From the sequence record PV745554.1: a stretch of 64,000 bases of DNA. One strand, 5' to 3'. The position numbers and the translations under genes were made by a program. The notes beneath the pieces are model-generated. The model was not told the origin of the DNA. It saw only the letters and a program-made list of their open reading frames with translations, and did not search any database. Of this stretch, positions 2,466 through 42,657 are shown one piece after another. Each line of letters starts with the position of its first letter. Position 1 is the stretch's first letter.

Positions 2466-2533
2466 CTCCTCTATGTCGTCGTCTCGACCCTTCTAGGTGG
2501 AGGTTCCCGTTCTGTCAACACACAACCGCCAAC
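2466..2533 (-). promoter_or_regulatory. sigma70 promoter cassette (leftward copy)
   Basis: Minus strand reads GTTGGCGGTTGTGTG-TTGACA-N17-TAGAAG...GACGACATAG-AGGAG-GTG. Confidence 0.8.
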
Positions 2534-2538
2534 GAGGC

Positions 2539-2571
2539 AAAAAGAAACCGCCGACCCGAAGGCCGGCGGTT
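2539..2571 (-). terminator. Rho-independent terminator
   Basis: Minus strand CCGCCGGCC-TTCG-GGTCGGCGG then TTTCTTTTT. Confidence 0.85.
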
Positions 2572-2591
2572 GGGAGGTGTGGGCTCGGGAA

Positions 2592-4451
2592 CTAGACGTC
2601 GAGGATGAAGAAGCGCTCGCTGGACGGGCCGTCGACCTCGACGATGAAGCCCGCCTCCAGCAGCGCCTCGATCGCCTTGCCGGTGTGGTAGAGCGACAGG
2701 TCGGACGCTTCGCTGATCCGGGCCAGCGAGAAGCCGACGTTCTGACCAACCTTGAGGTCTTGCAGCGACAGTTCGTTCAGGGTGGTGATCACCGCCCCGG
2801 CCGGGGCCAGTTCATACGCGCCTTCGAAGTCGCGATCCTCCGACAGACGCACGAGGCCTTCCTGCTCGATATTGTCGAGCAGCGAGGCCAGGAACTCGGG
2901 ATCGACGAAGCCGACGTGGCTGCGGATTTCGCTCAGGTAGGCCGGGCCGTCGACGTCGACGGCGTTGAGGACCGCCAGCAGGGCGATGCCCGGCATGACC
3001 GCCACGACTTGCTCGGCCTTCTCCTCCTCGGAGATGTCGATCGGCACGCCCCCGCCGTTCGACAGAGGCACGATGGCTTCGTCCGGATGCAGGAGGATGA
3101 AGTCCTTGATCGCCCGCAGCGCCGCCAGGAAATGGTCCTTGGGGATTTCGTCGAGCTTGAAGGTGATGCGATCGTCGATGCCCATGGGATAGAGCGCCCG
3201 CAGATTGGCGACGATGTCCTCGGGCCACGCGGCGAGCACCGTGTCCCAGAGAACCTTGGGCATCTGGAAGGCCCCGAAAGACAGGAACTGGTCGGGGGTG
3301 GCGGCTTCGACCGCAGCGATGGACTCGTCGATGCTGGCGGGCGTGTAGCCGCCCACGACGCCGTTTTGCGTCGCGTGGAGCACCTCGGCGGCTTCCTCGG
3401 CGCTCAGCCCCGTGATGACCTTTTCCACGCCCTCCTCGGGCTCCTGGAGCGGCTCCAGGGTCTTGAGGCGATCGCTCAGGCCCTGGATCGACTCGTAGGC
3501 GTCAGTCGTGTCGACGGCGAGCTTCAGGGTCAGGCGCTCGGGGCGGGCGCTGAACTCCTCGCCCGTGATGGTGTAGACGCCCTCGCGCTCCAGGATTTCC
3601 AGGTTCAGGAAGCGCCCCGTGTCGTTGAGGGCGCGGAAGCGCGCGTAGAGCATGTCCTGCTCAGTCAGATCGGTGAAGATGCCCTTGTCGAGCGCGAACA
3701 GCAGTTCGCTGCTGGAGAGGGTCTGCTCGCCCATGCCGGAGACCTCCTCGGGCTGGTCCTTCGTGAACCTCAGGCCCGGCCCGGTGGTCTCGGTTTCTTG
3801 AGGGATGATGGGGTCTTCGATCACGGGGGCTTTCTCCTTGAAAACGATGGAGGTCAGTTCGCTCAGCGAGACCGACCAGTTGGTGTCGACCTGGGCGGCG
3901 TAGCGGCCCGACATGGGGTTCCAGGCGACCTTGCCGATCTCGCCGCTGACCATCTTGTCCTCCCAGGCCGAGCGGAACATCACGTCGGCGCCGCCGAAGT
4001 AGTCCGTCAGGTGGCCCGCGAAGGTCTCGATGTCCTCGCGGGACGCCGGGCGCACCTCGCGCAGCGGGTAGGAATGGTGGACGCCGGGGCGCGCGTCTTC
4101 GATCTCGACGAAGATCGGCCCGTGGTCGGTGTGGAAGCGCTCGGTGTAGCCGATCATCTCGCCTTGCGGGGTCATGACCATCACCGGCAGGGCCGAGAAC
4201 TTGTGGTTCAGGCGGTCCACGTAGTCGCTGGGATAGGCGGTGGTGGTGTAGATGAGGTTGTCGCCCCGGCGCACGCCGCTGTAGTCGACGACGCAGAGCG
4301 GCGTGGCCACCGCACCGCTCGGGAAGCGCGGCCGATCAACGAACACTTGCCCGTCCGCCACCGGCGGGGAGACGCCGTGAACGTAGGGGACCACCTCGCT
4401 GTAGGTGGCGATCCAGGCGGGCTTGACCCGGTCAAGGAAGGTTTCGGTCAA
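2592..4451 (-). CDS. large hypothetical protein with two C-terminal winged-helix-like repeats
   Basis: 619 aa; LLDNIEQEGLVRL and AIEALLEAGFIVEV helix-wing motifs. Confidence 0.8.
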   Translation of the reverse strand: MTETFLDRVKPAWIATYSEVVPYVHGVSPPVADGQVFVDRPRFPSGAVATPLCVVDYSGVRRGDNLIYTTTAYPSDYVDRLNHKFSALPVMVMTPQGEMIGYTERFHTDHGPIFVEIEDARPGVHHSYPLREVRPASREDIETFAGHLTDYFGGADVMFRSAWEDKMVSGEIGKVAWNPMSGRYAAQVDTNWSVSLSELTSIVFKEKAPVIEDPIIPQETETTGPGLRFTKDQPEEVSGMGEQTLSSSELLFALDKGIFTDLTEQDMLYARFRALNDTGRFLNLEILEREGVYTITGEEFSARPERLTLKLAVDTTDAYESIQGLSDRLKTLEPLQEPEEGVEKVITGLSAEEAAEVLHATQNGVVGGYTPASIDESIAAVEAATPDQFLSFGAFQMPKVLWDTVLAAWPEDIVANLRALYPMGIDDRITFKLDEIPKDHFLAALRAIKDFILLHPDEAIVPLSNGGGVPIDISEEEKAEQVVAVMPGIALLAVLNAVDVDGPAYLSEIRSHVGFVDPEFLASLLDNIEQEGLVRLSEDRDFEGAYELAPAGAVITTLNELSLQDLKVGQNVGFSLARISEASDLSLYHTGKAIEALLEAGFIVEVDGPSSERFFILDV

Positions 4452-4460
4452 GGCGGTCCC

Positions 4461-4925
4461 CTATTCGTTTGGAATGACGGACGCCGGGGCGTCCAGGTCG
4501 AAATTCTCGCCCTCATCGGTGAGGGCGAAGGTGGCGTAGCCGTCAGGGCTCTTGACCATGGTCAGCAGCTTGATCAGGCCGTGCTTCTCCAGCGCCTGGG
4601 CGGCGGGATAGTCGGCGTGCTTGTAGAAGACGTTGAGTTGCCCGCCTCGGCCCAGGATGCGCACGCTGCGCAGCAGCATGGCCTCCTGTTCGCTCAGCCC
4701 CAGCGCGCCCTTGATCCGCACGCGGGCGAGATGGACGTCGATCACGTGCGTCTGGCCCTGGTGCTCGAACTCGATGATCGCCAGCGGGCCGAACGATCCG
4801 TTGGTCACCGCCAGGACGACGCCCTCGAACTCGGTCGTTTTCCGCGCCGTGATGGGCACATAGTAGTCGAAGAAGACCGTCTTGCCCTTCATCACGTGGT
4901 GGGCCTGGGGCGCGACCGTGCTCAT
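4461..4925 (-). CDS. hypothetical protein, C-terminal winged-helix-like
   Basis: 154 aa; AAQALEKHGLIK...FALTDEG. Confidence 0.75.
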   Translation of the reverse strand: MSTVAPQAHHVMKGKTVFFDYYVPITARKTTEFEGVVLAVTNGSFGPLAIIEFEHQGQTHVIDVHLARVRIKGALGLSEQEAMLLRSVRILGRGGQLNVFYKHADYPAAQALEKHGLIKLLTMVKSPDGYATFALTDEGENFDLDAPASVIPNE

Positions 4926-5729: not shown

Positions 5730-5915
5730 CTACTCCTGTTCTGCTTTGGCGGGACGCCGGCTTCTGGACTGACGCGGGACGAACACCAGGGCGACGGTCG
5801 AGCCGCCGGTGTACTTGGTGCGGCGGCTATAGAGCCAACCGCCCTCGATTTCCAGGCGCTCGGTCACCTGACCATCGCCCTCGTCGATCTTTTCCCATTT
5901 CGTCTTCTTGGCCAT
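5730..5915 (-). CDS. hypothetical protein
   Basis: 61 aa, ATG after GAGGAG. Confidence 0.75.
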   Translation of the reverse strand: MAKKTKWEKIDEGDGQVTERLEIEGGWLYSRRTKYTGGSTVALVFVPRQSRSRRPAKAEQE

Positions 5916-5938
5916 GACGCTCCTCGAATTTCGCCGGC

Positions 5939-5967
5939 ACCCTAGAGGAGCGCCGATGTGTTGACAA
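5939..5967 (-). promoter_or_regulatory. leftward sigma70-type promoter of the divergent switch
   Basis: Minus strand TTGTCA-N17-TAGGGT upstream of the leftward operon. Confidence 0.55.
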
Positions 5968-5994
5968 GCGCCAAATGGCTCTGGCTGGCGAGTG

Positions 5995-6052
5995 TTGACA
6001 AGGCGGCGGTGGTCCCTTAGAAGGGCGGCGACGACAACGAAAGGAGGCGCTG
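5995..6052 (+). promoter_or_regulatory. sigma70 promoter cassette
   Basis: TTGACA-N17-TAGAAG, GACGACAACG leader, AGGAGG. Confidence 0.85.
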
Positions 6053-6352
6053 ATGCGCTACGTTCTGGAGTACATGGACTGCGACGACCAGATCGTCCAG
6101 GTCGACTTCGAAGCCCCCACCCGCGCCTCGGCGATCGCCAAGGCCAAGCGCCTCTTCGTGAAGGCGGTCGAGGCCAGCGGCCGGTCGATCTTCACCGGCT
6201 ACATGTTTGAGGACCACTCGATCACCATGAAGGTGAAGCTGGTCCCGTTCGGCACCCTGAGCCGCTACCTGGGCCTGGGCAAGGTCACCGCCGCCAACAT
6301 CTCGTTCGACGACCGCGACGCCAAGATCGCCCGCCAGGACATGGCCGCATGA
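6053..6352 (+). CDS. hypothetical protein
   Basis: ATG after AGGAGG. Confidence 0.8.
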   Translation: MRYVLEYMDCDDQIVQVDFEAPTRASAIAKAKRLFVKAVEASGRSIFTGYMFEDHSITMKVKLVPFGTLSRYLGLGKVTAANISFDDRDAKIARQDMAA

Positions 6353-7757: not shown

Positions 7758-7946
7758 GTGACCAACGAGGAGATCACCTTCGCGGGCCTGATCAAGGCCA
7801 TGGAGGACGCCCGCCGTGAAGCCCGCGCGGTGGGCGATCTCCTCAAGGCCGCCGAGATCGACGGCTGGTTCAAGGAGCACGCCCGGATCATCCGGGTGAT
7901 CCGCGACAAGGCCGAGGCCGAAGAATTCGACAATCCGTTGGCGTGA
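7758..7946 (+). CDS. hypothetical protein
   Basis: GTG start, typical codon use. Confidence 0.65.
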   Translation: MTNEEITFAGLIKAMEDARREARAVGDLLKAAEIDGWFKEHARIIRVIRDKAEAEEFDNPLA

Positions 7947-8010
7947 GAGTGTTGACAGTCTCGCCGCGCCCGGCTACAAGCCTCCTCGACGACAACGCAA
8001 GGAGCCTGTC
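7937..8010 (+). promoter_or_regulatory. sigma70 promoter cassette with upstream 18-bp element
   Basis: GTTGGCGTGAGAGTG-TTGACA-N17-TACAAG, GACGACAACG, AAGGAG. Confidence 0.85.
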
Positions 8011-9174
8011 TTGACCGATTTCCCGATCATCCGCGCCGCCATCGAAGGCCGCCGCGCCGCTGGTTTCGACACCGTCCTGGCCAACGCCGACGCCTTCGCT
8101 GCCGAGGGCGTGCTGATCAAGGCCGAGTTCGAGGACATCAAGGGCGTCTTCAGCCGCTGCCTCTCCGACGCCTGGGAAGTCGTGCGCAAGCGCCACTTCT
8201 TCATCGACCACGCCCTGCGCTCCAAGGAAGTCGAGGACCTCTTCTGGAGCTTCTCGATCCCCTACCCGCACGTCATGCCGGGCTTCCTGAAGAAGACCCT
8301 GGCGGCCAAGAACATCCCGGCCAACGTCCGCGAAGACCTCGTGGCCCTGTTCAACGAGGGCATCGCCCTCAACGACAAGCTGGTGGCGCTCAAGCCTCTG
8401 ATCGGCAAGCGCGCGCCCAAGAAGACCAAGGTCGAGATCGAGCGCGAGGGCAAGGAACGCACCTGCCAAATCTGCGGTCGCGGCATCCTGGCCGAGGGCG
8501 GCATCATCGCCCACCACGGCTACACCCGCCCCTACGAGGGCTGGCAGACCGCCTCCTGCTCTGGCGCCCGCGAGGTTCCGTTCGAACTGAGCCGCGACGA
8601 ACTGGGCAAAGAGATCGCCGCCCTGAAGGCGTGGCGCGTGCGCAAGGTGAACGAGCGCGCGGCGATCGAAGCCGAGACCGTCAAGCTGATCCTGAAGTAT
8701 CAGGTCTCCGAGCAGGACCCGCGCAAGGCGCAGGGCTTCAAGCTGACCGTCGATCGCCAGATCGAAGTCACCCGCGACACCTTCGAGGCCCTGAAGGTCT
8801 CCACGCCCGAGGCCTTCTCGGGCAAGTACAACCCCCGCAAGGAGGGCAAGTACACCTACGAGGCCCTGACCTTCGACGGCCTGAAAGAGCAGGCCCTGGG
8901 CATGGTCGACATCGAGATCGGCCGCCTGGACAACGACATCCTGCGCCAGCAGGCCCGCTATGACGCCTGGAGCCAGAAGGCGATCTTCGCCAAGGGCCGC
9001 TATTGGTTCATCGGTGATGAGGTCCAGACCGCCGACGGCGCGGTGGGCAGCATCAAGGGCTTCTACCAGCACTATCCGCCGCAGCCGGGCGACGTCGCGG
9101 GCGGCGTGCGTCTCGGGGCCGAGACCAGCGGTTTCGTCTCCTGGAACGTCGAGAGCCTGGAGCCGGTGGCCTGA
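8011..9174 (+). CDS. hypothetical protein with putative Zn-binding motif
   Basis: 387 aa; CQICGR...AHHGYTRP...WQTASC. Confidence 0.8.
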   Translation: MTDFPIIRAAIEGRRAAGFDTVLANADAFAAEGVLIKAEFEDIKGVFSRCLSDAWEVVRKRHFFIDHALRSKEVEDLFWSFSIPYPHVMPGFLKKTLAAKNIPANVREDLVALFNEGIALNDKLVALKPLIGKRAPKKTKVEIEREGKERTCQICGRGILAEGGIIAHHGYTRPYEGWQTASCSGAREVPFELSRDELGKEIAALKAWRVRKVNERAAIEAETVKLILKYQVSEQDPRKAQGFKLTVDRQIEVTRDTFEALKVSTPEAFSGKYNPRKEGKYTYEALTFDGLKEQALGMVDIEIGRLDNDILRQQARYDAWSQKAIFAKGRYWFIGDEVQTADGAVGSIKGFYQHYPPQPGDVAGGVRLGAETSGFVSWNVESLEPVA

Positions 9175-11027: not shown

Positions 11028-11098
11028 TTGGCGTTAGAGTGTTGACAGTCATTGGGGCCTCCTCTATATCCACCCTCGACGACAACGAGGAGGCCCCG
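11027..11098 (+). promoter_or_regulatory. sigma70 promoter cassette with upstream 18-bp element
   Basis: GTTGGCGTTAGAGTG-TTGACA-N17-TATATC, CCTCG-ACGACAA-CGAGG hairpin with SD. Confidence 0.88.
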
Positions 11099-12847
11099 AT
11101 GACGACCGAGACCATGACCCTGAGCTTCCGTATCGAAGGCGCCGCCCTGGTGGAGCGCGCCCGCGACCGGGTCATCGAAGGCGCCTGGGAGCATGGCCTG
11201 CGCATCCTCGTCGAGGGTCTGCACGGCATGACCTACGAGATCGCCATCGACATCCTGATGGGCAAGTACACCCTGGGCGGCTGGTCCTCGGACCCCGAGG
11301 GCGTCTACCTCACCGAGCAAGACCCCGAGGACGAGACCTTCAAGCGCTACAAGGAGACGTTCGACTTCCAGTTCGCCGGCGTCTTCAAGGACGAGACGGG
11401 CCGCATCATGCGCCCCTACGCCATCGTCGACAGCTACGGCAAGAAGGACTTCGACTCCAAGTACCGCTACGACCACGCCCGCGCGCGCGGCTCGGACGAG
11501 TTCCTGTCGCGCCCGGTGCGCTACCACGACATCCTGGGCAAGGACCCGATCGACTGGGCCTATCGCGCCCTGCATTACGCCAACCTGCCGCAGCAAGACA
11601 TCGTCAAGCGGGTCAAGAACCCCGGCGAATACCACGGCACGATCCAGGAGATGGCCGCGCTATTCGAGGTCATCCACGACTACCCCAAGCTCCTGCTGCC
11701 CTACGTCACCAACAGCGCCCAGGAGGCCGTCGACAAAGCGGTCGCCTCCGGCCGCCGGATGGAGAAGCGCGGCTATGTCCACGAGTACGGCCCCAATGAT
11801 CCGTTCGCTGAGTTCCACGCCGTGACGACCACGGCGATCGACAACTTGCCGCCCCAGTGGGTGATCGAGAACCAAGCCTATGAGCCCCCGGCGCCGGTCA
11901 AGGCCCTGGAGGACTTCAAGCAGGGCGTCGCGAGCGCCCCTGATGAGGTCTCGGCGATGAACCGGATGATCGTCAAGGAGGTCAACGCCGGCACGAGCAT
12001 GTCGACCGCCATCGCCCTGGCCCGCGCCAAGATGGCGCTGATGGGTGGCATGGCCGAGGACCCTGAAGAGCGCATGTCGGCGATTAACGCCCACTTGGCG
12101 GCGGAGGCCGAGCGCGCCGAAGGCAAGTCCAACGAGACCTACCGCAAGGCGATCCAGGAGCAGGCCGCCGGCGACTACTTCGATCTCGTGTACACGGGTA
12201 AGGGTGGCGAGGAGGTGACCCTGAAGGTCCCGACCGCGCCGTTCGAGAAGTGGTGCCTGTGGCGCACCGCCGGCGCTCACCTCGCCAAGCCGTGGAAGCG
12301 CGTCACCTATTCGGGTCTGAAGTGCTTCGGCGACGACCCCTATCACACCGACTGGGTCATCGGCGCGGGCCTGGAGCCCGAGGATTGGCCGACCCGCAGC
12401 GACGACCCGCTGCACAAGGCCGCCTGGGACAAGCGCTTCGAGGTCGCCCAGAGCAAGATGGGCGGCAATCTGGTGGTCCTGCTGGGCACGGGCTTCGTGA
12501 CCGGCAAGATCAAGCACCTCAAGCCGGGCGAGACCCTGGAGCGGGGGCAGATCGGCGTGATCCGCAACGCTGGCCCCGACTACGTCCAGGCCGCCGTCAG
12601 CGCGATCGACAACAACGCCGCCCTGATCACCGAGAACGGCGGCAACGTCGCCCACCTCGTCACCGAGTTCCGGGACAAGCCGCTGCGTCTGGTGCGCATC
12701 GCCGACGCCCGCAAGATTTTCAAGGACGGCATGGAGGTCGACCTCGACCTGGATAAGGCATGGCGCCGTATCTACGAAGGCTCGCGCGGTCCCGCGCCGG
12801 GTGACCTCTACCTGCCGCCGGAATGGGAGATTCAAGATGACGCATGA
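11099..12847 (+). CDS. protein with C-terminal PEP-utilising-enzyme mobile (phosphohistidine swivel) domain
   Basis: GTGFVTGKIKHL...IGVIRNAGPDY...ALITENGGNVAHLVTEFRD...IFKDGMEVDLD matches the ITExGGxxSH signature. Confidence 0.75.
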   Translation: MTTETMTLSFRIEGAALVERARDRVIEGAWEHGLRILVEGLHGMTYEIAIDILMGKYTLGGWSSDPEGVYLTEQDPEDETFKRYKETFDFQFAGVFKDETGRIMRPYAIVDSYGKKDFDSKYRYDHARARGSDEFLSRPVRYHDILGKDPIDWAYRALHYANLPQQDIVKRVKNPGEYHGTIQEMAALFEVIHDYPKLLLPYVTNSAQEAVDKAVASGRRMEKRGYVHEYGPNDPFAEFHAVTTTAIDNLPPQWVIENQAYEPPAPVKALEDFKQGVASAPDEVSAMNRMIVKEVNAGTSMSTAIALARAKMALMGGMAEDPEERMSAINAHLAAEAERAEGKSNETYRKAIQEQAAGDYFDLVYTGKGGEEVTLKVPTAPFEKWCLWRTAGAHLAKPWKRVTYSGLKCFGDDPYHTDWVIGAGLEPEDWPTRSDDPLHKAAWDKRFEVAQSKMGGNLVVLLGTGFVTGKIKHLKPGETLERGQIGVIRNAGPDYVQAAVSAIDNNAALITENGGNVAHLVTEFRDKPLRLVRIADARKIFKDGMEVDLDLDKAWRRIYEGSRGPAPGDLYLPPEWEIQDDA

Positions 12848-14598: not shown

Positions 14599-14822
14599 TC
14601 GACTACGTCTACCGCAAAGACCCGCGCGGCAGCGACTACGGCGCCCAGCGGATGGACCTGAGTGAAGCCCTGGCGGTGGTCGCGGCCGAGAAGCAGGACT
14701 TCCTCATTCGCTTGGTCGAGGTCCTGCACGAGAACAACCTCCTGCGCGACGCCGACGTGCTGGAGTTGCTCGGCAAGGGCTGGGGCCTGGAGGCCTACGA
14801 CGTCCTGTACGTAGACGATTGA
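14595..14822 (+). CDS. hypothetical protein
   Basis: GTGA overlap after AGGAG. Confidence 0.7.
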   Translation: MIDYVYRKDPRGSDYGAQRMDLSEALAVVAAEKQDFLIRLVEVLHENNLLRDADVLELLGKGWGLEAYDVLYVDD

Positions 14823-14876
14823 CAACACTCTCGCGCCAGCATAGAAGCCTTCTCGACGACAACGAAGGAGGCTTCC
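14819..14876 (+). promoter_or_regulatory. sigma70 promoter cassette with inverted 18-bp element in the spacer
   Basis: TTGACA-ACACTCTCGCGCCAGCA-TAGAAG, GACGACAACG, AAGGAGG. Confidence 0.88.
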
Positions 14877-15248
14877 GTGAAGCTCGCGACCCAAGACCGG
14901 ACCGATCCCCGCCTGAACGCCGACTACCGCCTGATCAAGGCGGTCTTCTACTACGGCGGCCCGGCCGAGTACCCGATCCACCTGGACGAACGCTGGAGTG
15001 CGGTGACGCCGGCCCAGGTCGAGGACCAGATTTCGGTCCTCTGCCGCGACCTCGCCAAATGCGCGGGCAACACCCTGGCGCCGGCGACCTTCTACGAGCG
15101 CGCCAAGCTGAGCTTCGCCGAGGTGCCGCCGGTGTCCGACGAGTTCTGGGGCCTGATCTCCGAGACCACCAAGCAGAACATCCTCGCCCTGAAGGATCGC
15201 TTCACCGTCCACGGCAGCGGCTTCATGCTCTCGTGGGCCAAGGTCTGA
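14877..15248 (+). CDS. hypothetical protein
   Basis: GTG after the cassette SD. Confidence 0.8.
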   Translation: MKLATQDRTDPRLNADYRLIKAVFYYGGPAEYPIHLDERWSAVTPAQVEDQISVLCRDLAKCAGNTLAPATFYERAKLSFAEVPPVSDEFWGLISETTKQNILALKDRFTVHGSGFMLSWAKV

Positions 15249-16288: not shown

Positions 16289-16305
16289 TCCTTGGCCGTC
16301 TTGTG

Positions 16306-16362
16306 TTGACAAAGGCAGGTTCGCCGGCCTAGAACGTCATCGACGACAACAAAGGAGGCCCC
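16306..16362 (+). promoter_or_regulatory. sigma70 promoter cassette
   Basis: TTGACA-N18-TAGAAC, GACGACAAC, AAGGAGG. Confidence 0.85.
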
Positions 16363-16719
16363 ATGCCGCTGTATGATTTCCCGACCGGCCCGACCACGAT
16401 GGAAGACATCGAAGCGTTCGTCGCCGGCGCCCAGGCGGTGGTCAACGCCCAGATGGCGAAGACCTTCCCGAACGTGAGCCCGCCGGTCCTGACGATCGAG
16501 CCGGTGCGCGCCAACAGCCAGTTCGCCAAGATCGTGGCAAGCGACCGCGCCCAGCGCTCGGTCTGGGCGTTCGTTCGCCTGGAGAACGGCCTGATCTACA
16601 AGCCTTCCTCCTGGAAGGTCCCGGCCAAGCACGCGCGCGGCACCATCCACTCCGCTGGCCACGGCGCCGAGTACGTCGACTGGACCGGCCCGCGCTACAT
16701 CAAGGACATGCGCCCGTGA
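16363..16719 (+). CDS. hypothetical phage protein
   Basis: SVWAFV...GLIYKPSSWKVPAKHARGTI motif. Confidence 0.8.
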   Translation: MPLYDFPTGPTTMEDIEAFVAGAQAVVNAQMAKTFPNVSPPVLTIEPVRANSQFAKIVASDRAQRSVWAFVRLENGLIYKPSSWKVPAKHARGTIHSAGHGAEYVDWTGPRYIKDMRP

Positions 16720-24682: not shown

Positions 24683-24753
24683 TTGGCGTTTGTGTGTTGA
24701 CAGCATCAGTCCGGTTCTGTAGACCTCTGCTCGACGACAACGAGGAGGCCCCC
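24683..24753 (+). promoter_or_regulatory. sigma70 promoter cassette
   Basis: TTGGCGTTTGTGTG-TTGACA-N17-TAGACC, GACGACAACG, AGGAGG. Confidence 0.85.
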
Positions 24754-24960
24754 ATGCCGCATCTGAGCAAACAGTCCTACAGCTTCGACTACACCAGCGA
24801 CGCCCTGGCGGCGGCCGGCGAGTTCGAGGCCCTGACGACCGAGTTCTACCGCTACGAGACGCGCTACCTCTACGACGCGGCGCGCGCGATCGTCGGCGTC
24901 GAGGTCCGCGTCATGGACGAGGACGGCTTCTTCGTCGGCTACGTGGCGGGCGAGGCCTAA
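24754..24960 (+). CDS. hypothetical protein
   Basis: ATG after the cassette SD. Confidence 0.75.
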   Translation: MPHLSKQSYSFDYTSDALAAAGEFEALTTEFYRYETRYLYDAARAIVGVEVRVMDEDGFFVGYVAGEA

Positions 24961-28067: not shown

Positions 28068-28128
28068 TTGACAACACTCTAACGCCAACATAGAAGGGCC
28101 TCCGACGACAACGCCGGAGGCCTTTTTC
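28068..28128 (+). promoter_or_regulatory. sigma70 promoter cassette with inverted 18-bp element and terminator-like hairpin
   Basis: TTGACA-ACACTCTAACGCCAACA-TAGAAG; GGCCTCCG-ACGACAACGC-CGGAGGCC-TTTTT. Confidence 0.88.
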
Positions 28129-28359
28129 ATGCTCTATCTGACCCCGATCAAGAAACCGGTGACGGACGCCGAGTTCGGGATGTCCGTCAAGGACGTTGAA
28201 CTGAATGGCCGCCGCTATCGCGTGAGCCGCTCAGGTGAGGTGCGTGGCTACGTGCGCAATTCGCGTGTCCTGACGATGCACCACGAAGACCTGCGTCTGC
28301 TGGACTTCCGTGGACCAACCGCTATCCGCGCCCGCGCCGCCTCGGGGTGGTTCGAATGA
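28129..28359 (+). CDS. hypothetical protein (paralogue of 32582-32800)
   Basis: GRRYRVSRSG...RARAASGWF. Confidence 0.75.
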   Translation: MLYLTPIKKPVTDAEFGMSVKDVELNGRRYRVSRSGEVRGYVRNSRVLTMHHEDLRLLDFRGPTAIRARAASGWFE

Positions 28360-29477: not shown

Positions 29478-29549
29478 GTTGGCGCGAGAGTGTTGACAGC
29501 ATCGTCCTGACGCCATAGAACCCTCTCGACGACAACGAAGGAGGCCCCG
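29478..29549 (+). promoter_or_regulatory. sigma70 promoter cassette with upstream 18-bp element
   Basis: GTTGGCGCGAGAGTG-TTGACA-N17-TAGAAC, GACGACAACG, AAGGAGG. Confidence 0.88.
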
Positions 29550-29936
29550 ATGGGCGCGCAACTGGAAATCAAGGAAGTCTTCGCCGCCTCGCAGGACGCC
29601 GTCTATTCCTGGCGTGGCGAAGAAGGCGACGAGTACCGCGTGATGAGCCTCGTTCACGTCCAGACGATGGACGGCCGCTGGTTCCTGATGCCGGCCATGC
29701 GGCCCTACTCGGACGTCGAGCGCTTCGACTTCGAGATGGCCTGCGAGGGCGAGCCCCTCTTTGGCATGGCGACCGTCTACTGGGACGCCGAGGCCTTCGC
29801 CGCCAAGGTCCGCGCGCGCGGCGTGATCCGCCCGGAATTCTGGGTCGAGTACGAGCCCGACACCCGCACGACCGCGCAGCGCTTCGAGGACATGTGGATC
29901 GAAGAGCAGTACGACCGCATGGGGTACGCCGCATGA
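29550..29936 (+). CDS. hypothetical protein
   Basis: ATG after the cassette SD. Confidence 0.8.
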   Translation: MGAQLEIKEVFAASQDAVYSWRGEEGDEYRVMSLVHVQTMDGRWFLMPAMRPYSDVERFDFEMACEGEPLFGMATVYWDAEAFAAKVRARGVIRPEFWVEYEPDTRTTAQRFEDMWIEEQYDRMGYAA

Positions 29937-32078: not shown

Positions 32079-32150
32079 GTTGGCTTTAGAGTGTTGACAG
32101 TTCTCTAGTCTGGCCACTATATGCTCCTCGACGATAACGAGGAGGCCACG
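32079..32150 (+). promoter_or_regulatory. sigma70 promoter cassette with upstream 18-bp element
   Basis: GTTGGCTTTAGAGTG-TTGACA-N18-TATATG; CTCCTCG-ACGATAA-CGAGGAG hairpin. Confidence 0.88.
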
Positions 32151-32582
32151 ATGAGCTACACCGAAGCCCACATGGAAGCGCTGGTCGCCTTCCACCAAAA
32201 CGAGATGGACGTCGGCGAGGGCACCTGGGGTCGCTACGTCAAGACGCTGGAGAAGCGCCTGGGCATCGACGACCTCGACGGGGACAACTCCGAAGAGGCC
32301 CGGTCCTACTACTGCGACATGGGCTACTCGCTCGACGACACCTTCGAGATGTTCGAGAAGGGCGTATCGGTCGATGACGCCGAGAAGGCGATCCTGCGCT
32401 CGTGCGCAGACGCGGCGGTCCGCGCCGTCAACGCCGGCGTCTCGGGTCTCGTCGAGGCCCAGGAGCGCGCCAAGGCGGCTGGCAAGACCGACTATGTCGA
32501 GCAGCTTGAGAAGCAGATCAACGCCTTGCTCGATGACCAGAGCGCCGCCGCCACGGCGGCCGAGAAAGCGTTCGGCTGCTGA
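32151..32582 (+). CDS. hypothetical protein
   Basis: ATG after the cassette SD. Confidence 0.8.
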   Translation: MSYTEAHMEALVAFHQNEMDVGEGTWGRYVKTLEKRLGIDDLDGDNSEEARSYYCDMGYSLDDTFEMFEKGVSVDDAEKAILRSCADAAVRAVNAGVSGLVEAQERAKAAGKTDYVEQLEKQINALLDDQSAAATAAEKAFGC

Positions 32583-34512: not shown

Positions 34513-34529
34513 GCCTTGGCTGCGATGTG

Positions 34530-34585
34530 TTGACAAGGCTGCGCGGCCTCCTGTAGAAGACCCTCGACGACAACAGGAGGCCCTC
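34530..34585 (+). promoter_or_regulatory. sigma70 promoter cassette
   Basis: TTGACA-N18-TAGAAG, GACGACAAC, AGGAGG. Confidence 0.85.
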
Positions 34586-35068
34586 ATGCCCGACAACTCG
34601 AACTTCGACGCCGCCGTCCTCGTGGGCGTGGAGATCATCAAGACCAAGCCGGAAGGGCTCACCGCCCTGGAGGCCGTCCAGCGGTTCCAGCACCAGTCGC
34701 CGGACTTCGTCGACCTCGTCACCCGCTTCAACAAGCTGACGGCCGCCTTGCCGGCGGTGGTCAACGGCCATCACCTCCAGTCGACCTGCGCCGAGTGGGT
34801 CCTGGACGAGTCTGAGCAGCGCATCAAGCTGCCGTTCGAGACCATCGCCCAGCGCGTGGAGTTCTACGCCAAGCAGATGACGATCCCGGCCTACGGCTAC
34901 CTGATGGATCGCTACAAGGACCGCCTCGACAGCAAGATCGCCACCGTGCGCGGCTGTCTGGAGGACCAGAACTACCTCGGCGCCAGCTACAACCTCCTCG
35001 ACCTGGAGGAGACCTTCCAGGAGATGGTCGACCGTCACGACGATCTGGTTTCGGACGGCTATCCCTGA
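34586..35068 (+). CDS. hypothetical protein
   Basis: ATG after the cassette SD. Confidence 0.8.
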   Translation: MPDNSNFDAAVLVGVEIIKTKPEGLTALEAVQRFQHQSPDFVDLVTRFNKLTAALPAVVNGHHLQSTCAEWVLDESEQRIKLPFETIAQRVEFYAKQMTIPAYGYLMDRYKDRLDSKIATVRGCLEDQNYLGASYNLLDLEETFQEMVDRHDDLVSDGYP

Positions 35069-35411: not shown

Positions 35412-35936
35412 ATGGGCCTGACGGGGTGCTGCTTTGCGCTCCTGACGGCCGGCTCGGTCGCCTTCGCGGTTGACCGTGGGGGCAGGGCGCTCAAGACGAG
35501 CGGCCTGCTCCTCTTCGCCACCTGGGCGTTTTCGGTGACCGTTGGGTCGACCCTCGTGGCGGGCTACAAGCCCTACATCTACGCCTGGGTCGATGGCATG
35601 TTCGCCGGCGCCATCGGCGTCATGTTGACGGCTCGCTTCCAGCGCTGGCGCGCCGGGCTCTTCGCCCTGGCGATCCTCCAGATGGTGCTCCATCTGGCGA
35701 TGATTGGCATCTGGGACTTCTCGCTGGCGGCGCGCCGCCTTCACGTCTTCTCGCTCAACCTCACCTACGGCCTGGAACTCTTCGTCCTCACCATCGGGGC
35801 GGCGGCCTATCGTCCAGGCGAGCGCGACGACGTGCCGGAGATCATCGAGGTCCAGCACCACATCGTCGGCAAGGATGACGGGACCCTACTCGACTGGCTT
35901 GAGTGTGTTGACAAAGCCAGACGACCCGTCCTATAA
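35412..35936 (+). CDS. multi-pass membrane protein
   Basis: About five hydrophobic segments. Confidence 0.75.
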   Translation: MGLTGCCFALLTAGSVAFAVDRGGRALKTSGLLLFATWAFSVTVGSTLVAGYKPYIYAWVDGMFAGAIGVMLTARFQRWRAGLFALAILQMVLHLAMIGIWDFSLAARRLHVFSLNLTYGLELFVLTIGAAAYRPGERDDVPEIIEVQHHIVGKDDGTLLDWLECVDKARRPVL

Positions 35937-35964
35937 GCACCTCGACGACAACGAGGAGGCCAGC
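35908..35964 (+). promoter_or_regulatory. sigma70 promoter cassette
   Basis: TTGACA-N18-TATAAG; CCTCG-ACGACAA-CGAGG; overlaps the end of the upstream CDS. Confidence 0.88.
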
Positions 35965-36396
35965 ATGCCCACGCCCAAGACCGCAACGATCTCCCGCGCG
36001 CTCGCCTACTTGGCGATCACCGGCGGCACGAACTGCCTCACGATCAACACCCGGATCGCCCTGCATCCCTATCACGATCTGGTCCCGGTCAAGTGCAAGA
36101 TCGGCGACACCGAACTGACTCGCCACGTCTACAAGCTCACCGACGAGGGCCGCGCCCTGGCCGAGAAGAGCAAGCTCTGGAAGGGTCACCAGAAGCTCGT
36201 CGAGATGGGCTTCACCTTCAAGCCGTCCAAGCGCCGCCAGTCCTCGCGCTTCCTGTCCTACGATCACGCCGAGCACGATTGCCGCAAGGATCGTCGCGGC
36301 GCCTTCATCTCCGGCGACAGCCCCTACGCCCAGCCGGCGCCGGGGGAGACGCCCGAGGGCAAGAAGGACTGGGACTACATCAAGGTGGAGGTCTAA
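35965..36396 (+). CDS. hypothetical protein
   Basis: ATG after the cassette SD. Confidence 0.8.
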   Translation: MPTPKTATISRALAYLAITGGTNCLTINTRIALHPYHDLVPVKCKIGDTELTRHVYKLTDEGRALAEKSKLWKGHQKLVEMGFTFKPSKRRQSSRFLSYDHAEHDCRKDRRGAFISGDSPYAQPAPGETPEGKKDWDYIKVEV

Positions 36397-40223: not shown

Positions 40224-40224
40224 C

Positions 40225-41287: not shown

Positions 41288-41568
41288 TGGCGAGGTCCCG
41301 TGTACGCGTCAGGATCACCCAGCTTCGCTACCTGGAGGTGCGTGCGAAACTCCAGCGCGGGCCGTGGAAGCATCTGATCCGCGCCTATCGCGGCTGGCGC
41401 TGCTACAATCCCGCCACCGGCACGACCGATATGGCCGAGCGCTACAGCGACGACACGGTGCGGCGCATGGTCGCAAGCGGGACGCTGGACGTCCACGAGT
41501 TCGACGAGGACGGCGTGGTCCAGGTCTATCGCCTGGGCAAGGCCTTCGACGGCTGGAGGTCGTCATGA
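41287..41568 (+). CDS. hypothetical protein
   Basis: TVRRMVASGTLDV motif. Confidence 0.7.
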   Translation: MARSRVRVRITQLRYLEVRAKLQRGPWKHLIRAYRGWRCYNPATGTTDMAERYSDDTVRRMVASGTLDVHEFDEDGVVQVYRLGKAFDGWRSS

Positions 41569-41918
41569 AGTACAAGTGGATGGCCAACCCCTACTACGCC
41601 CAGATAGGGTTCTCGCCCCATCAGGCGCGCTACTGGGACGTCGAGAAAGCCATGGTCCTCAACCTGTGGGACGACATCGGCCGCGTCGGCGGGCTCGAAG
41701 ACCCCAGCCACTGGAAGCTTGTCTGGAGGCCCTTGCAAGTGGGCCGCGAAGGGCGATATGTCCTGGTCACCGCCCAGGCTGGAATCGCCTACCCCATGGC
41801 GTACCCAAAGGGCTATCGCGGCGCGATCGTGGAGATCGCCGCCGATGAGGACTGCCGGCTGCGGCCGACGGTGCGGGACGAGACCGGGCGGATTCTGGAG
41901 TATCGGGGCGTCCAGTGA
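41565..41918 (+). CDS. hypothetical protein
   Basis: ATGA overlap after GGAGG. Confidence 0.7.
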   Translation: MKYKWMANPYYAQIGFSPHQARYWDVEKAMVLNLWDDIGRVGGLEDPSHWKLVWRPLQVGREGRYVLVTAQAGIAYPMAYPKGYRGAIVEIAADEDCRLRPTVRDETGRILEYRGVQ

Positions 41919-42538
41919 AGAGCGATTGGCGCGAGACCTTGGCGGCGGCGTTCGACCGGCCCCTCCCCGTGGAGGAGCCGGTGGCGGACCCCTATGCCTT
42001 CGATCCCAACGCGCCGCCGCTGATCCTCGACCTCACCCCGGACGAGAAGCTGTCGCTGACCGAGTACCGCTGGGCGGCGCTGGACGCGTCGGGCGCGGTC
42101 ATGGGCGAATTCTGGGCGATCTCCCAGGCGGCCGAGGCGCTCGCCACCTTCCTCTACCCAGGCTTGGCCAGCTACGCGCGCGGCGGGCACACCGGCCGGC
42201 TCAAGGCCAACCGCCTGCGCCGGCTGAGCGAGGCCCAGAACTGGCGCTGCTGCTACTGCCATGGGCAGATGCGCATGCCCCACGACTGCGACGGCCCCAA
42301 CGAGCCGGACATGGCGACGCTGGAGCACGTCACCCGCGTCACCGATGGCGGTGGTAGCACCTGGGACAACCTGATCGCCGCCTGCCAGACCTGCAACTCC
42401 CATCGCGGGAGCGTCATGCCCCTGAAGTGGTGGAAGCTGCGCCAGAAGCTCCTCCCCGATTGGCCGGCCTGCTCGCCGATCACCGACGCGGCCCGCTACG
42501 CCCTGCGCGGCTATGGGCTCTTGCGGCGCGGGTGGTGA
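41915..42538 (+). CDS. HNH endonuclease
   Basis: CCYCH...ATLEHV...GGGSTWDNLIAACQTCNSHRG. Confidence 0.9.
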   Translation: MKSDWRETLAAAFDRPLPVEEPVADPYAFDPNAPPLILDLTPDEKLSLTEYRWAALDASGAVMGEFWAISQAAEALATFLYPGLASYARGGHTGRLKANRLRRLSEAQNWRCCYCHGQMRMPHDCDGPNEPDMATLEHVTRVTDGGGSTWDNLIAACQTCNSHRGSVMPLKWWKLRQKLLPDWPACSPITDAARYALRGYGLLRRGW

Positions 42539-42584
42539 CAACCGTTTTTGGTTGTAAAGTGAGTTCACAACCTTTTTCGGTTGT
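42538..42584. promoter_or_regulatory. two palindromic operator-like sites
   Basis: ACAACC-N6-GGTTGT at 42538 and 42567, just upstream of a promoter. Confidence 0.6.
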
Positions 42585-42596
42585 AGCGCGACTGTG

Positions 42597-42657
42597 TTGA
42601 CGAGGTAACGAAAGCGGACTAAATGTAGGGCCTCGACGACAACGAAGGAGACCCCGC
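42597..42657 (+). promoter_or_regulatory. sigma70 promoter cassette
   Basis: TTGACG-N17-TAAATG, GACGACAACG, AAGGAG. Confidence 0.8.

Follow-up and report, generated by a model that had tools for sequence, protein, structure and literature searches.

Introduction

To judge by analogy, the closest known systems to the promoter cassettes described here are the promoter-early stem-loop (PeSL) cassettes of T4-type phages (Arbiol 2010, PMC2839356; Comeau 2014, PMC4122927) and the hairpins of the T4 genes e, soc, 49 and I-TevI. Early mRNAs of T4 are also targets of RegB, which cuts them at GGAG (PMC3014915). In Caulobacter, the RpoD (sigma-73) promoter consensus is TTGaCgS / GCtANAWC (PMC8144410), and in its phage phiCbK the gene tgrL (gp216) is, by experiment, early and highly expressed, while early transcripts drop after 15 min (PMC10688885). 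Repeated cassettes acting as boundary devices are known in T4-type phages; for the phiCbK-like phage family, they have not been previously described. Here we analyze the final 64 kb of the phiCbK-like Caulobacter phage BL64 (record positions 160635-224634, hereafter the window).

Anatomy and distribution of the cassettes

The window contains 14 cassettes and the BL64 genome at least 21, with the downstream gene co-oriented in every case. Beyond the window lie seven further full cassettes, at genome positions 116-203 kb, and, on top of these, about eight promoter-only copies. A cassette profile searched with nhmmer returned exactly 14 sites in the window (E values of 6e-19 to 3e-12), and the next-best match (E = 0.0085) was the inverted upstream element belonging to one of the cassettes. 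The order of the elements is an upstream element (TTGGCG-N3-GAGTG), GTG-TTGACA, a spacer of 17-18 nt, TAGAAG (with variants TAGAAG/C), a CCTC discriminator, the leader GACGACAAC, a strong Shine-Dalgarno (SD) sequence, and the start codon. The upstream element is conserved and adjoins the -35 box; three of the window copies have it in inverted orientation, inside the promoter spacer. Table 1 compiles the coordinates.

The promoter layout proposed in the initial annotation was reproduced throughout: all 14 -35 hexamers, from 2513-2518(-) through 42597, a TAGAAG-like -10 box 17-18 nt after each of them, the leader G 12-13 nt past the start of the -10 box (15 at 42597), and a GGAG-type SD after the leader. 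The start codon is 20-25 nt away from the G. The -35 box at 42597 is TTGACG, not TTGACA. The two leader variants that it listed, GACGATAAC at 32130 and GACGACGAC(ATA) at 2475-2483(-), and its example stem, CCCTCCTCG-ACGACAA-CGAGGAGGG at 22974-22998, are likewise present. The upstream element, its inversion in three copies, the additional genomic cassettes, and the arms located in the spacer had escaped that first reading.

Table 1. Coordinates (window positions) and computed SD opening costs of the cassettes and of one divergent promoter. P, probability that the SD is paired to upstream sequence.
Position	Strand	Type	-35	-10	Leader	Start codon	Stem (5' arm / 3' arm)	SD opening cost (kcal/mol)	Remarks
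2458..2532	-	cassette; upstream element 2519-2532	TTGACA 2513-2518	TAGAAG 2490-2495	GACGACGAC 2475-2483	GTG 2458-2460	spacer anti-SD arm GGGAACCTCC 2499-2508 / GGAGTTCCC 2461-2469	3.9 vs 1.4	P = 0.99, yet cost only 3.9; by sequence, putative driver of BL64_228c, 227c and 226c (226c, tgrL homolog)
5913..5981	-	divergent promoter without GACGACAAC; 17-nt spacer	TTGTCA 5962-5967	TAGGGT 5939-5944		5913-5915	spacer CGCTCCTC complementary to SD region GAGGAGCG	5.7 read-through vs 0.3 native	
5981..6055	+	cassette	5995	6018	6030-6038	ATG 6053	no SD-masking stem	1.9	opens the rightward array, in divergent region
7938..8013	+	cassette	7952	TACAAG 7975	7988-7996	TTG 8011	weak/bulged, CTCCT 7982-7986 / AGGAG 8000-8004	BL64 3-4.7, BL10 8.6, phiCbK 2.9	
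11028..11101	+	cassette	11042	TATATC 11065	11078-11086	ATG 11099	11 bp, GGGGCCTCCTC 11054-11064 in spacer / GAGGAGGCCCC 11087-11097 over SD	19.3	22-nt loop; orthologs retain the stem with altered arms (GGGACTCCTCT / AGAGGAGTTCCC in phiCbK)
14819..14879	+	cassette, inverted-element type; spacer ACACTCTCGCGCCAGCA	14819	14842	14855-14863	GTG 14877	GAAGCCTTCT 14844-14853 / AGGAGGCTTC 14866-14875	14.2	BL64_252 stop codon inside the -35 box
16292..16365	+	cassette	16306	TAGAAC 16330	16342-16350	ATG 16363	no specific stem in any of five lineages	2.8 (BL64); 2.0-3.9 across lineages	
22946..23005	+	cassette, inverted-element type	22946	22969	22982-22990	ATG 23003	8 bp (9 with C-G closing pair), CCCTCCTC 22974-22981 / GAGGAGGG 22991-22998	16.1	orthologs in phiCbK, Karma, BL57: upstream half of standard type, homology from -15 on
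24683..24756	+	cassette	24697	TAGACC 24720	24733-24741	ATG 24754	moderate, interrupted	7.1	
28068..28131	+	cassette, inverted-element type with terminator-like hairpin	28068		28104	ATG 28129	GAAGGGCCTCC 28093-28103 / GGAGGCCTTTT 28116-28126, then T-run (T5)	18.4	SD-ATG spacing lengthened to 13 nt
29479..29552	+	cassette	29493	TAGAAC 29516	29528-29536	ATG 29550	no SD-masking stem	4.4	P = 0.03
32080..32153	+	cassette, leader variant	32094	TATATG 32118	GACGATAAC 32130-32138	ATG 32151	6 bp, CTCCTC 32124-32129 / GAGGAG 32139-32144	9.6	
34516..34588	+	cassette	34530	34554	34566-34574	ATG 34586	8 bp, GGCCTCCT 34545-34552 in spacer directly before -10 / AGGAGGCC 34575-34582	18.0; orthologs 11.5-16.1	
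35894..35967	+	cassette	35908	TATAAG	35944-35952	ATG 35965	weak	8.2; orthologs 2.5-3.3	in 3' end of BL64_303, whose stop TAA lies within the -10 box
42583..42660	+	cassette	TTGACG 42597	TAAATG 42620	42635-42643	ATG 42658	no stem	0.8	last and most degenerate; directly after HNH endonuclease gene

The leader GACGACAAC is exact in 12 of the 14 window copies. Unbiased scans found 18 exact and three one-mismatch copies in BL64, 10 exact and one one-mismatch copy in phiCbK, and nine exact and two one-mismatch copies in BL57, with two more-degenerate copies in each of the latter two phages. Allowing up to one mismatch, the 9-mer gave 46 matches against 17.4 expected, a count reached in none of 100 shuffles; its recurrence is far above chance. 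A 9-mer scan of the window located no additional copies outside the cassettes. Bajun, a phage of Brevundimonas, and contigs from freshwater metagenomes also have the same cassette, while the 185,579 bacterial and archaeal genomes scanned yielded chance-level singletons only, none of them in Caulobacter.

The boxes match the host RpoD consensus, and tgrL is the third gene downstream of the orthologous cassette in phiCbK; on these two grounds, the reading of the cassettes as promoters is well supported by their sequence. The intergenic gaps between units measure about 70 nt and a canonical terminator is present in almost none of them.

Proposed function of the cassettes

The overall best explanation, to which we assign a probability of roughly 0.55, is that the cassettes are both the start points of early transcription units in this phage and boundary elements between these units, through masking of the ribosome binding site (RBS). 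Host RpoD (sigma-73) would recognize the promoter in each cassette, with the upstream element flanking the -35 box, and transcription would begin at the G of GACGACAAC, producing an unstructured leader of 20-25 nt that offers a strong GGAGG to the ribosome. Because the short gaps almost never hold a canonical terminator, the RNA of the upstream unit is expected to continue into and past the cassette that follows. Ahead of the predicted +1, about half of the cassettes have sequence (the discriminator and some of the -10 box, or a piece of the spacer) that complements the SD region, and the read-through RNA would fold over the RBS. RNA started locally would lack this 5' arm, which would make the cassette a boundary element that keeps expression of the promoter-proximal gene tied to the promoter of that gene. 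For the paralogous pair at window position 28104 and genome position 137054, a U-tract would convert the stem into an intrinsic terminator. Masking of the first gene alone would provide partial insulation only, unless, speculatively, translational coupling or Rho polarity extends the effect.

Computed folding of the SD region

In read-through RNA, opening the SD costs 14-19 kcal/mol in six window cassettes, above the top value among 78 other genes (13.1), and the mean cost is 9.7 kcal/mol for cassette genes vs 4.6 for these other genes (MWU p=0.008). When the RNA begins at the predicted +1, the cost falls to 0.4-6.7 kcal/mol. The probability that the SD is paired to sequence preceding +1 is at least 0.9 in 14 of the 21 cassettes, compared with 0.49 for shuffled upstream sequence. 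The two arms of a cassette also suit each other: in BL64, own-arm duplexes reach -18.1 vs -16.0 for swapped arms (p=0.002), and own arms outperform swapped ones in BL57 (p=0.001) and phiCbK (p=0.045). Strong stems are retained in the orthologs of five lineages; in the 11078 group, the sequences of the arms have changed.

The 5' arm is not in every case the discriminator, being located in the spacer that separates the -35 box from the -10 box at 11078 and 34566. Such spacer-type arms, with loops of 22-25 nt (11078, 34566, and the metagenomic cassette L131), fit RBS masking and not termination. Around the predicted start of a leaderless promoter at genome position 145684(-), the arms are CTCCATCA/TGATGGAG, of unrelated sequence, with costs of 12.6 vs 2.1 kcal/mol.

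The hairpin confined to read-through transcripts, which the initial annotation had proposed, is thus borne out computationally for about half of the cassettes, by opening costs, own-arm pairing, and orthologs, and not for all 14. The cassettes with leaders at 6030, 16342, 29528, and 42635 fold without a meaningful stem, and approximately 8 of the 21 (~40%) have no stem better than swapped controls.

Alternative explanations

The cassettes could be merely strong host-type early promoters with an optimized discriminator and initial transcribed sequence, whose anti-SD complementarity has no RNA-level function and is a by-product of a pyrimidine-rich discriminator lying beside a purine-rich SD in a genome of 66% GC. 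We consider this unlikely, although several results point that way. Pairing in the fixed register (0.54) does not exceed that in slid registers (0.48-0.54); CCTC at -4 to -1 is kept in 67-89% irrespective of the partner base, the C at -1 in ~89% even where +10 is not G; shuffled upstream sequence already pairs the SD with a probability of 0.49; and a specific stem is missing in some 40% of the cassettes. The core pairing matches a run of pyrimidines with a run of purines, and that between CCTC and GAGG could be incidental. Stem covariation among relatives is weak column by column, with compensatory pairs detected by RNAalifold in 0/15 and 1/10 on the ortholog sets, and the compensatory changes cited for the stems come from inspection of shifted registers, not from RNAalifold. 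Finally, the promoter at 5913-5981(-) has an anti-SD stretch though no co-directional gene lies upstream. Against a by-product stand the preference for own arms in three genomes, the six cassettes whose opening cost tops that of all 78 other RBSs, and the leaderless promoter that repeats the design using different sequence. Moreover, the spacer arms are perfect complements of 8-11 bp to the SD region, in a stretch where RNA polymerase reads little sequence, and they persist in diverged orthologs and in one unrelated metagenomic cassette.

That the stem-loops chiefly stop or attenuate transcription arriving from upstream, with RBS masking secondary, is quite unlikely in our estimation. In T4-type phages, PeSL stem-loops overlap the -35 box, the spacer, or the -10 box, or closely precede the start site, and one of them is an effective terminator by lacZ assay (PMC2839356). 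The cassette at 28104 looks like a true terminator: in its group and at genome position 137054, a GC-rich stem of 11-13 bp precedes a T4-5 run in all lineages, the group has a lengthened SD-ATG spacing that makes room for the stem, and the stem has an opening cost of 15.2 in all lineages. Its phiCbK ortholog is called by TransTermHP and appears as a 'predicted rho-independent terminator' in JX100813. The T5 tail and this annotation make attenuation a real alternative. However, the U-tract is limited to the pair 28104/137054, the other strong stems being followed by CCCC or GCCG; two of the strongest stems have loops of 22-25 nt, unlike intrinsic terminators; and a generic terminator scan showed no excess (11 found vs 9.9 expected).

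The invariance of the leader may have a different cause, namely that GACGACAAC, with or without the flanking CCTC/GAGG inverted repeat, is recognized by a factor specific to the phage. It could serve as an operator at +1, comparable to the stoperators of Cluster A mycobacteriophages, through which a repressor shuts off the early units all at once; or it could mark early mRNAs, as an RNA tag, for a factor acting in translation or decay, for which T4 RegB (PMC3014915) offers a precedent. The nine bases stay invariant or nearly so in BL64, phiCbK, and BL57 while spacers and coding flanks diverge by 20-30%, and the fall of phiCbK early transcripts after 15 min would suit such a factor. In CcrColossus, a phage of the same host, the GAGTTGACAGCCG promoters do without the leader save for one copy, and the leader is therefore not required by the host RNA polymerase. 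We nevertheless regard a recognition site as improbable: no candidate protein was found, the motif is non-palindromic and confined to the cassettes, and its conservation is also explicable by an optimal initial transcribed sequence or by a leader that is A/C-rich and unstructured.

On top of any expression role, the cassettes may be homology patches for modular gene shuffling, as in the PeSL model, which we hold to be possible but doubtful. Across BL64, BL10, phiCbK, Karma, and BL57, the gene that follows the 28104-group cassette is a different one each time, five in all, and in BL57 and phiCbK, the modules of genes led by the 29528 and 32130 cassettes come in another order. The upstream half of the cassette before BL64_272 is a different one in phiCbK, Karma, and BL57, with homology starting at -15. 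Of the suggestion in the initial annotation that the cassettes act as recombination points, one clear crossover inside a cassette stands, while the enrichment of breakpoints is a trend only: they occur at 46-54% of cassette-led gene starts vs 29-32% of other starts (Fisher p=0.25 and 0.08, not significant). Besides, gene boundaries are breakpoints in these phages generally, and only about 20-30 nt of identical sequence is shared, a short stretch.

Comparison with known systems

The promoters of the cassettes resemble the housekeeping promoters of the host: -35 TTGACA and -10 (C)TAGAAC/G fit the Caulobacter RpoD consensus TTGaCgS / GCtANAWC (PMC8144410), which, in contrast, includes neither the GACGACAAC leader nor TTGGCG-N3-GAGTG.

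Like PeSLs, the cassettes bring together a stop codon, a near-consensus sigma-70-type early promoter, an overlapping stem-loop, an SD, and a start codon in one short gap, are repeated many times in regions rich in small genes of unknown function, vary in stem position (in the spacer, at the -10 box, or immediately ahead of the start site), and have insulation of units and shuffling as proposed roles. They differ in lineage and host, these being prolate siphoviruses of Caulobacter and Brevundimonas, and in that the BL64 stem straddles the predicted start site with the SD itself as the 3' arm. Furthermore, BL64 has an invariant 9-nt leader at the predicted +1, an upstream element that is conserved and GC-rich in place of an AT-rich region, and a U-tract in just one cassette type.

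The hairpins of T4 e, soc, 49, and I-TevI (PMC3014915) similarly enclose the SD or AUG of long transcripts in a helix, and a promoter within the region encoding the 5' strand gives transcripts that lack this strand and are translated. In T4, single genes are involved and the contrast is temporal, between early read-through and late-promoter RNA, whereas in BL64 the design would recur at about 10-12 units. There, the upstream and downstream promoters belong to the same host-type class.

The SAS/ESAS of Cluster K mycobacteriophages (Pope 2011, PMC3203893) are also short, asymmetric, SD-containing repeats. They directly precede the start codon in 11-19 non-structural genes, in a single orientation; roughly half have an additional inverted repeat upstream, and their presence is conserved per gene family. 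SAS are not linked to a recognizable promoter, whereas the BL64 repeat is found where a consensus promoter has its predicted +1; the complementary arms, which on the SAS side are conserved 17-bp repeats, vary in BL64.

Architecture and position of the cassettes

The analyzed stretch matches positions 160635-224634 of the BL64 record (PV745554.1) with 100% identity and forms its right-hand 64 kb. BL64 is a member of Poindextervirus rogue, a phiCbK-like prolate siphovirus, and the GC content of the window is ~66%. Small genes of unassigned function extend in both directions from a divergent point near 5.9 kb, over about 40 kb on the rightward side; Pfam and PHROGs searches of the first genes behind the cassettes classified all of them as function-unknown.

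The initial annotation had listed fourteen cassettes in this region, and reading the sequence at each site confirmed all of them. Each consists of a -35 box (TTGACA, or TTGACG at 42597), a spacer of 17-18 nt, a TAGAAG-like -10 hexamer, a nine-nucleotide leader, a GGAG-type Shine-Dalgarno (SD) sequence and a start codon located 20-25 nt from the leader G. Cassettes are named here by the position of this G or, where stated, of the -35 box. The leader is exactly GACGACAAC in 12 window copies, GACGATAAC at 32130 and GACGACGAC at 2475-2483(-). Its G lies 12-13 nt past the start of the -10 box (15 nt at 42597), as originally noted, which places it 6-7 nt downstream of the hexamer. A profile built from the 14 cassettes recovered exactly those 14 in the window, with E values from 6e-19 to 3e-12, while the next matches, at E >=0.0085, corresponded to the inverted upstream element described below. 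The promoter cassette with an invariant leader at the predicted +1 is, in our judgment, solid.

The cassettes are compact. The stop-to-start gap measures 54-77 nt in 10 of 12, and the -35 box, the spacer or the -10 box often overlaps the 3' end of the preceding gene (Table). The annotated start of BL64_304, at 35908, is the TTG of a cassette -35 box TTGACA, which creates an overlap with BL64_303 (window 35908-35967); the cassette SD and the orthologous genes point to the ATG at 35965 as the true start. The last and most degenerate cassette (42583-42660) is directly preceded by an HNH homing endonuclease gene (41915-42538) and has the longest gap, 119 nt; in its phiCbK counterpart (L065, about 41477) the leader has been lost. 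The right copy of the annotated long terminal direct repeat, which occupies the final 11,252 bp (window 52749-64000), is cassette-free. In the divergent region (window 5913-6055), the rightward cassette promoter at 5995 stands back to back with a leaderless leftward promoter, TTGTCA-N17-TAGGGT, whose -35 DNA is shared with a rightward-reading TTGACA (5961-5966) that has no -10 box.

Coordinates of cassette features in BL64 and related phages. "Genome" refers to the whole BL64 record and "window" to the stretch analyzed; stem arms are given as 5'/3'.
Feature	Sequence	Position	Detail
Stem arms, cassette 11078	BL64 window		GGGGCCTCCTC/GAGGAGGCCCC; 5' arm in spacer
Stem arms, cassette 34566	BL64 window		GGCCTCCT/AGGAGGCC; 5' arm in spacer
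Stem arms, cassette 14855	BL64 window		GAAGCCTTCT/AGGAGGCTTC
Stem arms, cassette 22982	BL64 window		CCCTCCTC/GAGGAGGG
Stem arms, cassette 28104	BL64 window		GAAGGGCCTCC/GGAGGCCTTTT
Standard upstream element, examples	BL64 window	7938-7951, 11028-11041, 29479-29492	
Inverted element in spacer	BL64 window	14824-14841, 22951-22968, 28073-28090	
Stop codon of BL64_252	BL64 window	14819	inside -35 box
Stop codon of BL64_303	BL64 window	35932	inside -10 box
Full cassettes outside the window	BL64 genome	117111(+), 137054(-), 144126(-), 149336(-), 151143(-), 152672(-), 158734(-)	7 copies
Predicted +1 positions	phiCbK (JX100813.1)	160270, 162722, 165856, 169635, 171151, 178500, 179903, 183517, 186003, 188475, 189844, 156524(-)	
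Promoter-only copies	BL64 genome	near 53797(+), 116040(-), 123070(+), 141508(-), 145684(-), 154376(-), 157268(-)	
Repeated promoters of the (A)GAGTTGACAGCCGRCA type, examples	CcrColossus (L066)	19865, 25025(+); 36470, 31121, 12914(-)	
SD-less variant	phiCbK (L065)	about 30967-31060	
SD-less variant	Karma (L007)	4498-4570	
SD-less variant	Rogue (L014)	4392-4460	
SD-less variant	BL10 (L025)	824-900	

A conserved upstream element and the genome-wide set

Most cassettes contain a conserved TTGGCG-N3-GAGTG, which had escaped the initial annotation; it abuts the -35 box and makes GTG-TTGACA nearly invariant. In an inverted type, represented by 14855, 22982, 28104 and genome 152672(-), the upstream block is missing and its reverse complement is found within the spacer (TTGACA-ACACTCTCGCGCCAAC). 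Standard and inverted elements have in common a near-palindromic core, GTGTTGACAACAC, and a variant, TTGTCC-N3-GAGTG, is present in Brevundimonas phage Bajun and in metagenome contigs. Depending on the type, a factor bound at the element would be placed as an activator or as a repressor.

Several known signals were compared with these sequences by eye and rejected. A sigma-54 -24/-12 promoter has a different spacing, and GC is lacking at -12; the spacing is also wrong for the CtrA box TTAA-N7-TTAAC; GANTC/GcrA methylation sites are absent; and TTGGCG read as the -35 box of a second promoter has no -10 box. Base pairing between the leader and the 3' region of the 16S rRNA was likewise dismissed, as it covers 5 nt inside helix 44. 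A search of the window against Rfam gave no family match.

The whole BL64 genome was assembled from the record and scanned. The stretch from 116 to 203 kb contains 21 full cassettes, distributed over the two strands and each oriented toward its downstream gene. About eight additional copies are promoter-only, with the upstream element and the -35 and -10 boxes followed by another leader, which makes the promoter and the leader separable modules. The full and promoter-only copies outside the window include the promoter of the rIIA/rIIB operon and a cassette 5' of a tyrosine recombinase gene.

Distribution among phages

A BLAST search with the consensus cassette matched every phiCbK-like genome at 12-15 places; CcrColossus and CcrPW gave two matches and Bajun three. 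Reading the Bajun sequence raised its number to at least 10 cassettes with the same upstream element and the leaders GACGACAAC, AACGACGCAAC or GACGACGAC. Related cassettes occur on freshwater metagenome contigs (TTGTCCGTCGAGTG-TTGACA ... CGACGACAAC ... GGAGG), and multi-copy matches in IMG/VR were confined to three phiCbK-like genomes. A scan of one genome per bacterial species yielded no more than expected by chance, 39 singletons in unrelated taxa, and for this reason the cassette is regarded as neither a host nor a prophage element. Judged from this sequence distribution, it is a trait of this phage subfamily and not of the host.

CcrColossus, which infects the same host, has GAGTTGACAGCCG promoters without the leader; its sole leader-bearing exception precedes the tyrosine recombinase gene, which carries a cassette in BL64 too. 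As CcrColossus manages without it in that host, the host RNA polymerase is unlikely to require the leader. The repeated promoters of CcrColossus are of a type of their own, (A)GAGTTGACAGCCGRCA; their -10 boxes vary, and they share no leader.

In some relatives there is a cassette variant that has no SD after the leader and carries a conserved hairpin instead (GACGACAAC-GGCTGTCCGAAATTTGTAGACAGATTTCGGA); before phiCbK gp281, it would give a structured leader of ~57 nt or a small RNA. This variant is absent from BL64, where the gp281 homolog, BL64_286, has an ordinary cassette at 29528. In the metagenome sequences L111, L121 and L122, the upstream element includes CGTCGAG, the exact complement of CTCGACG at -3 to +4, and their read-through RNA could form a long-range stem enclosing the whole promoter, an arrangement not seen in BL64.

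Promoter class and timing of expression

The RpoD consensus of Caulobacter is TTGaCgS / GCtANAWC (PMC8144410). The boxes of 13 of the 14 window cassettes, TTGACA(A/G) and TAGAAG/TAGAAC/TATAAG separated by 17-18 nt (42597 being degenerate), fit an RpoD-dependent promoter at sigma-70-like spacing. A generic promoter scan found 0 promoters because it demands T at the last position of the -10 box, where the cassette boxes have G or C.

With respect to timing, experiments have shown early and high expression of the phiCbK gene tgrL (gp216), and expression peaks by 15 min for 41% of phiCbK genes (PMC10688885). The BL64 homolog of tgrL (window 805-1185, minus strand) comes third after cassette 2483(-), and tgrL itself third after the phiCbK ortholog of this cassette, a position that lends indirect support to the predicted cassettes being early promoters.

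Predicted masking of the ribosome binding site

The initial annotation had proposed that a stem hides the ribosome binding site (RBS) in read-through RNA only, leaving RNA from the local promoter free. For all 21 BL64 leaders, the span from -45 to +40 was folded. The probability that the SD is paired to nucleotides preceding +1 was at least 0.9 in 14 of the 21; when the upstream 45 nt were dinucleotide-shuffled, the mean probability was 0.49, and nine cassettes exceeded at least 98 of 100 shuffles. In the read-through context, the energy needed to free the SD averages 9.7 kcal/mol for the 13 rightward cassette-led genes (six at 14-19, three at 7-10 and four at 2-4 kcal/mol), compared with 4.6 kcal/mol for 78 other genes of the same region, whose maximum is 13.1 and second value 8.9 kcal/mol (Mann-Whitney p=0.008). 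For RNA starting at the leader G, this cost is 0.4-6.7 kcal/mol. Duplexes between the upstream (-40 to -1) and downstream (+8 to +32) segments were also stronger for own than for swapped pairs (BL64, -18.1 vs -16.0, permutation p=0.002; BL57, p=0.001; phiCbK, p=0.045), an advantage driven by 11 or 12 cassettes, with about eight being worse with their own partner. The computed contrast between the two transcripts is real, but the values are bimodal, and cassettes 6030, 16342, 29528 and 42635 lack a useful stem.

Cassettes were also collected from phiCbK, BL57, Karma, Rogue and BL10, and in this set the strength of the stem seems to go with the orthologous cassette. In the 11078 group the opening cost is 10-12.4 kcal/mol in all lineages, although the arms change to GGGA(C)CTCCTCT / AGAGGAGTTCCC (on inspection, a bulge and one double change from G:C to A:U are among the differences); the 28104 group reaches 15.2 kcal/mol everywhere, the 34566 group 11.5-16.1 and the 117111 group 9.8-13.5 kcal/mol, and the 16342, 6030 and 42635 groups are weak throughout. 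Comparable stems were found with different sequences: the costs for read-through vs native RNA are 15.9 vs 1.9 kcal/mol in a metagenomic cassette with an unrelated spacer arm (GGCCCTCCTGG/CCAGGAGGGACC), and 12.6 vs 2.1 kcal/mol in the leaderless BL64 promoter at genome 145684(-), where CTCCATCA-CCTGC-TGATGGAG surrounds the predicted start.

Other observations weigh against the hairpin. Column-wise covariation, a check that the initial annotation had proposed, is weak: RNAalifold detected compensatory changes in 0 of 15 and 1 of 10 pairs of two ortholog groups, in alignments where MAFFT misplaces shifted stems. Across 75 unique cassettes, pairing at the true register (0.54) showed no gain over registers slid by 1-4 nt (0.48-0.54), which pair equally well because the CCTCCTC run matches the GAGGAGG run at many offsets; mutual-information values over the cassettes are confounded by shared ancestry. 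The C at -1 is kept in ~89% of cassettes, even where +10 is not G, and CCTC, the discriminator, probably serves the promoter or the start site in its own right. Also against the hairpin, the spacer of the divergent leftward promoter contains CGCTCCTC, opposite GAGGAGCG, although there is no co-directional gene upstream.

Termination has to be weighed as well. Directly after the 28104 stem (28093-28126) comes TTTTT, and the paralog at genome 137054(-) has TTTT in this place; all lineages retain the T-run, which stretches the SD-ATG spacing to 13 nt, and the phiCbK record annotates the 28104 ortholog as a predicted rho-independent terminator. From these sequence features, the 28104 hairpin is very likely a terminator, in which the -10 box and discriminator would provide the 5' arm, the leader the loop, the SD the 3' arm and the SD-ATG spacer the U-tract. 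Only these two sites combine a GC-rich stem, a short loop and a U-tract. The remaining strong stems have no U-tract, and two of them have loops of 22-25 nt, which suits RBS masking and not intrinsic termination. In a generic terminator scan, terminator-like sites were at chance level.

According to the folding predictions, roughly half of the units have a stem over the RBS that is specific to read-through RNA, conserved and particular to the cassette; its effect on expression, as well as the start at the leader G, is what we infer. The original observation is upheld and extended, and its interpretation holds in part: firmly for promoter and leader, and for about half of the units as regards the stem.

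Cassettes and possible gene shuffling

In each of five phages, the gene that follows the 28104-type cassette is a different one, and BL57 and phiCbK differ from BL64 in the order of the modules behind 29528 and 32130. The upstream half of the cassette before BL64_272 is of the inverted type in BL64, Rogue and BL10 and of the standard type in phiCbK, Karma and BL57, with homology resuming at -15, which corresponds to one crossover within a cassette. The earlier suggestion that cassettes act as recombination points finds a trend in its favor, with breakpoints coinciding with 46-54% of the gene starts led by a cassette and with 29-32% of the others, but the difference is not significant (p=0.25 and 0.08).

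A possible regulator and significance

The phage phiCbK is a standard tool in Caulobacter cell-cycle research. Three quarters of its genes are of unknown function, and its transcription programme has, to our knowledge, no described promoters. Our search of the phiCbK literature found no description of the cassettes; the genome paper uses the word "promoter" once, on phage T5, and describes no phage promoters. With the cassettes, at least 21 transcription units predicted to be early can be mapped, and one or more gene starts are corrected; the cassettes are also predicted to be strong, compact host-type promoter and RBS parts for Caulobacter engineering.

The most promising leads come from the leader and the upstream element, and the invariance of the leader suggests a step at which the early genes are controlled globally. 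Speculatively, and with a probability that we place near one in four, GACGACAAC at the predicted +1 and the orientation-flexible TTGGCG-N3-GAGTG may be putative sites for a dedicated factor of the subfamily, either phage-encoded or co-injected, or an RNA-binding or RNA-cleaving protein, that would turn the entire early regulon on or off together, more than 20 units over ~85 kb, with the variable anti-SD arms adding unit-by-unit insulation. If true, this would represent a genome-wide code for early-gene control in a jumbo-size siphovirus, conserved from Caulobacter to Brevundimonas phages. If the stems work as predicted, the T4 device of a promoter inside an RBS hairpin would be usable genome-wide as a boundary element, and PeSL-like composite cassettes would extend to an unrelated, high-GC phage lineage.

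Comparison with known systems

The PeSLs of T4-type phages, for which promoter and terminator activity has been shown, recombine mutually (PMC2839356, PMC4122927). Like them, the BL64 cassettes join a stop codon, a sigma-70-like early promoter, a stem-loop variably placed over the promoter, an SD and an ATG, and they repeat a near-consensus early promoter between stop and SD/ATG in an ORFan-rich region, with 21 copies in BL64. However, the PeSL stem is upstream of the start site, whereas the BL64 stem straddles the predicted +1, has the SD as its 3' arm and is found in about half of the cassettes.

In the T4 genes e, soc, 49 and I-TevI, the 5' strand of an RBS-masking helix is skipped by an internal late promoter (PMC3014915). 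The likeness to e and soc is that the SD is predicted to lie in a helix in the long transcript, most clearly in the six window cassettes at 14-19 kcal/mol. Going by the predicted +1 and its low native cost, the local promoter may start RNA inside or past the 5' strand. In contrast to T4, where the promoters belong to different temporal classes, the flanking cassettes of BL64 are of one promoter type. A third parallel is offered by the SAS/ESAS repeats of Cluster K mycobacteriophages (PMC3203893): as with stoperators and SAS, the repeat is short and asymmetric, and all 21 BL64 leaders are co-oriented with the downstream gene. The BL64 cassettes resemble a fusion of a PeSL and a T4-type hairpin and are strictly neither, because the stem straddles the start site and the flanking promoters are of one temporal class.
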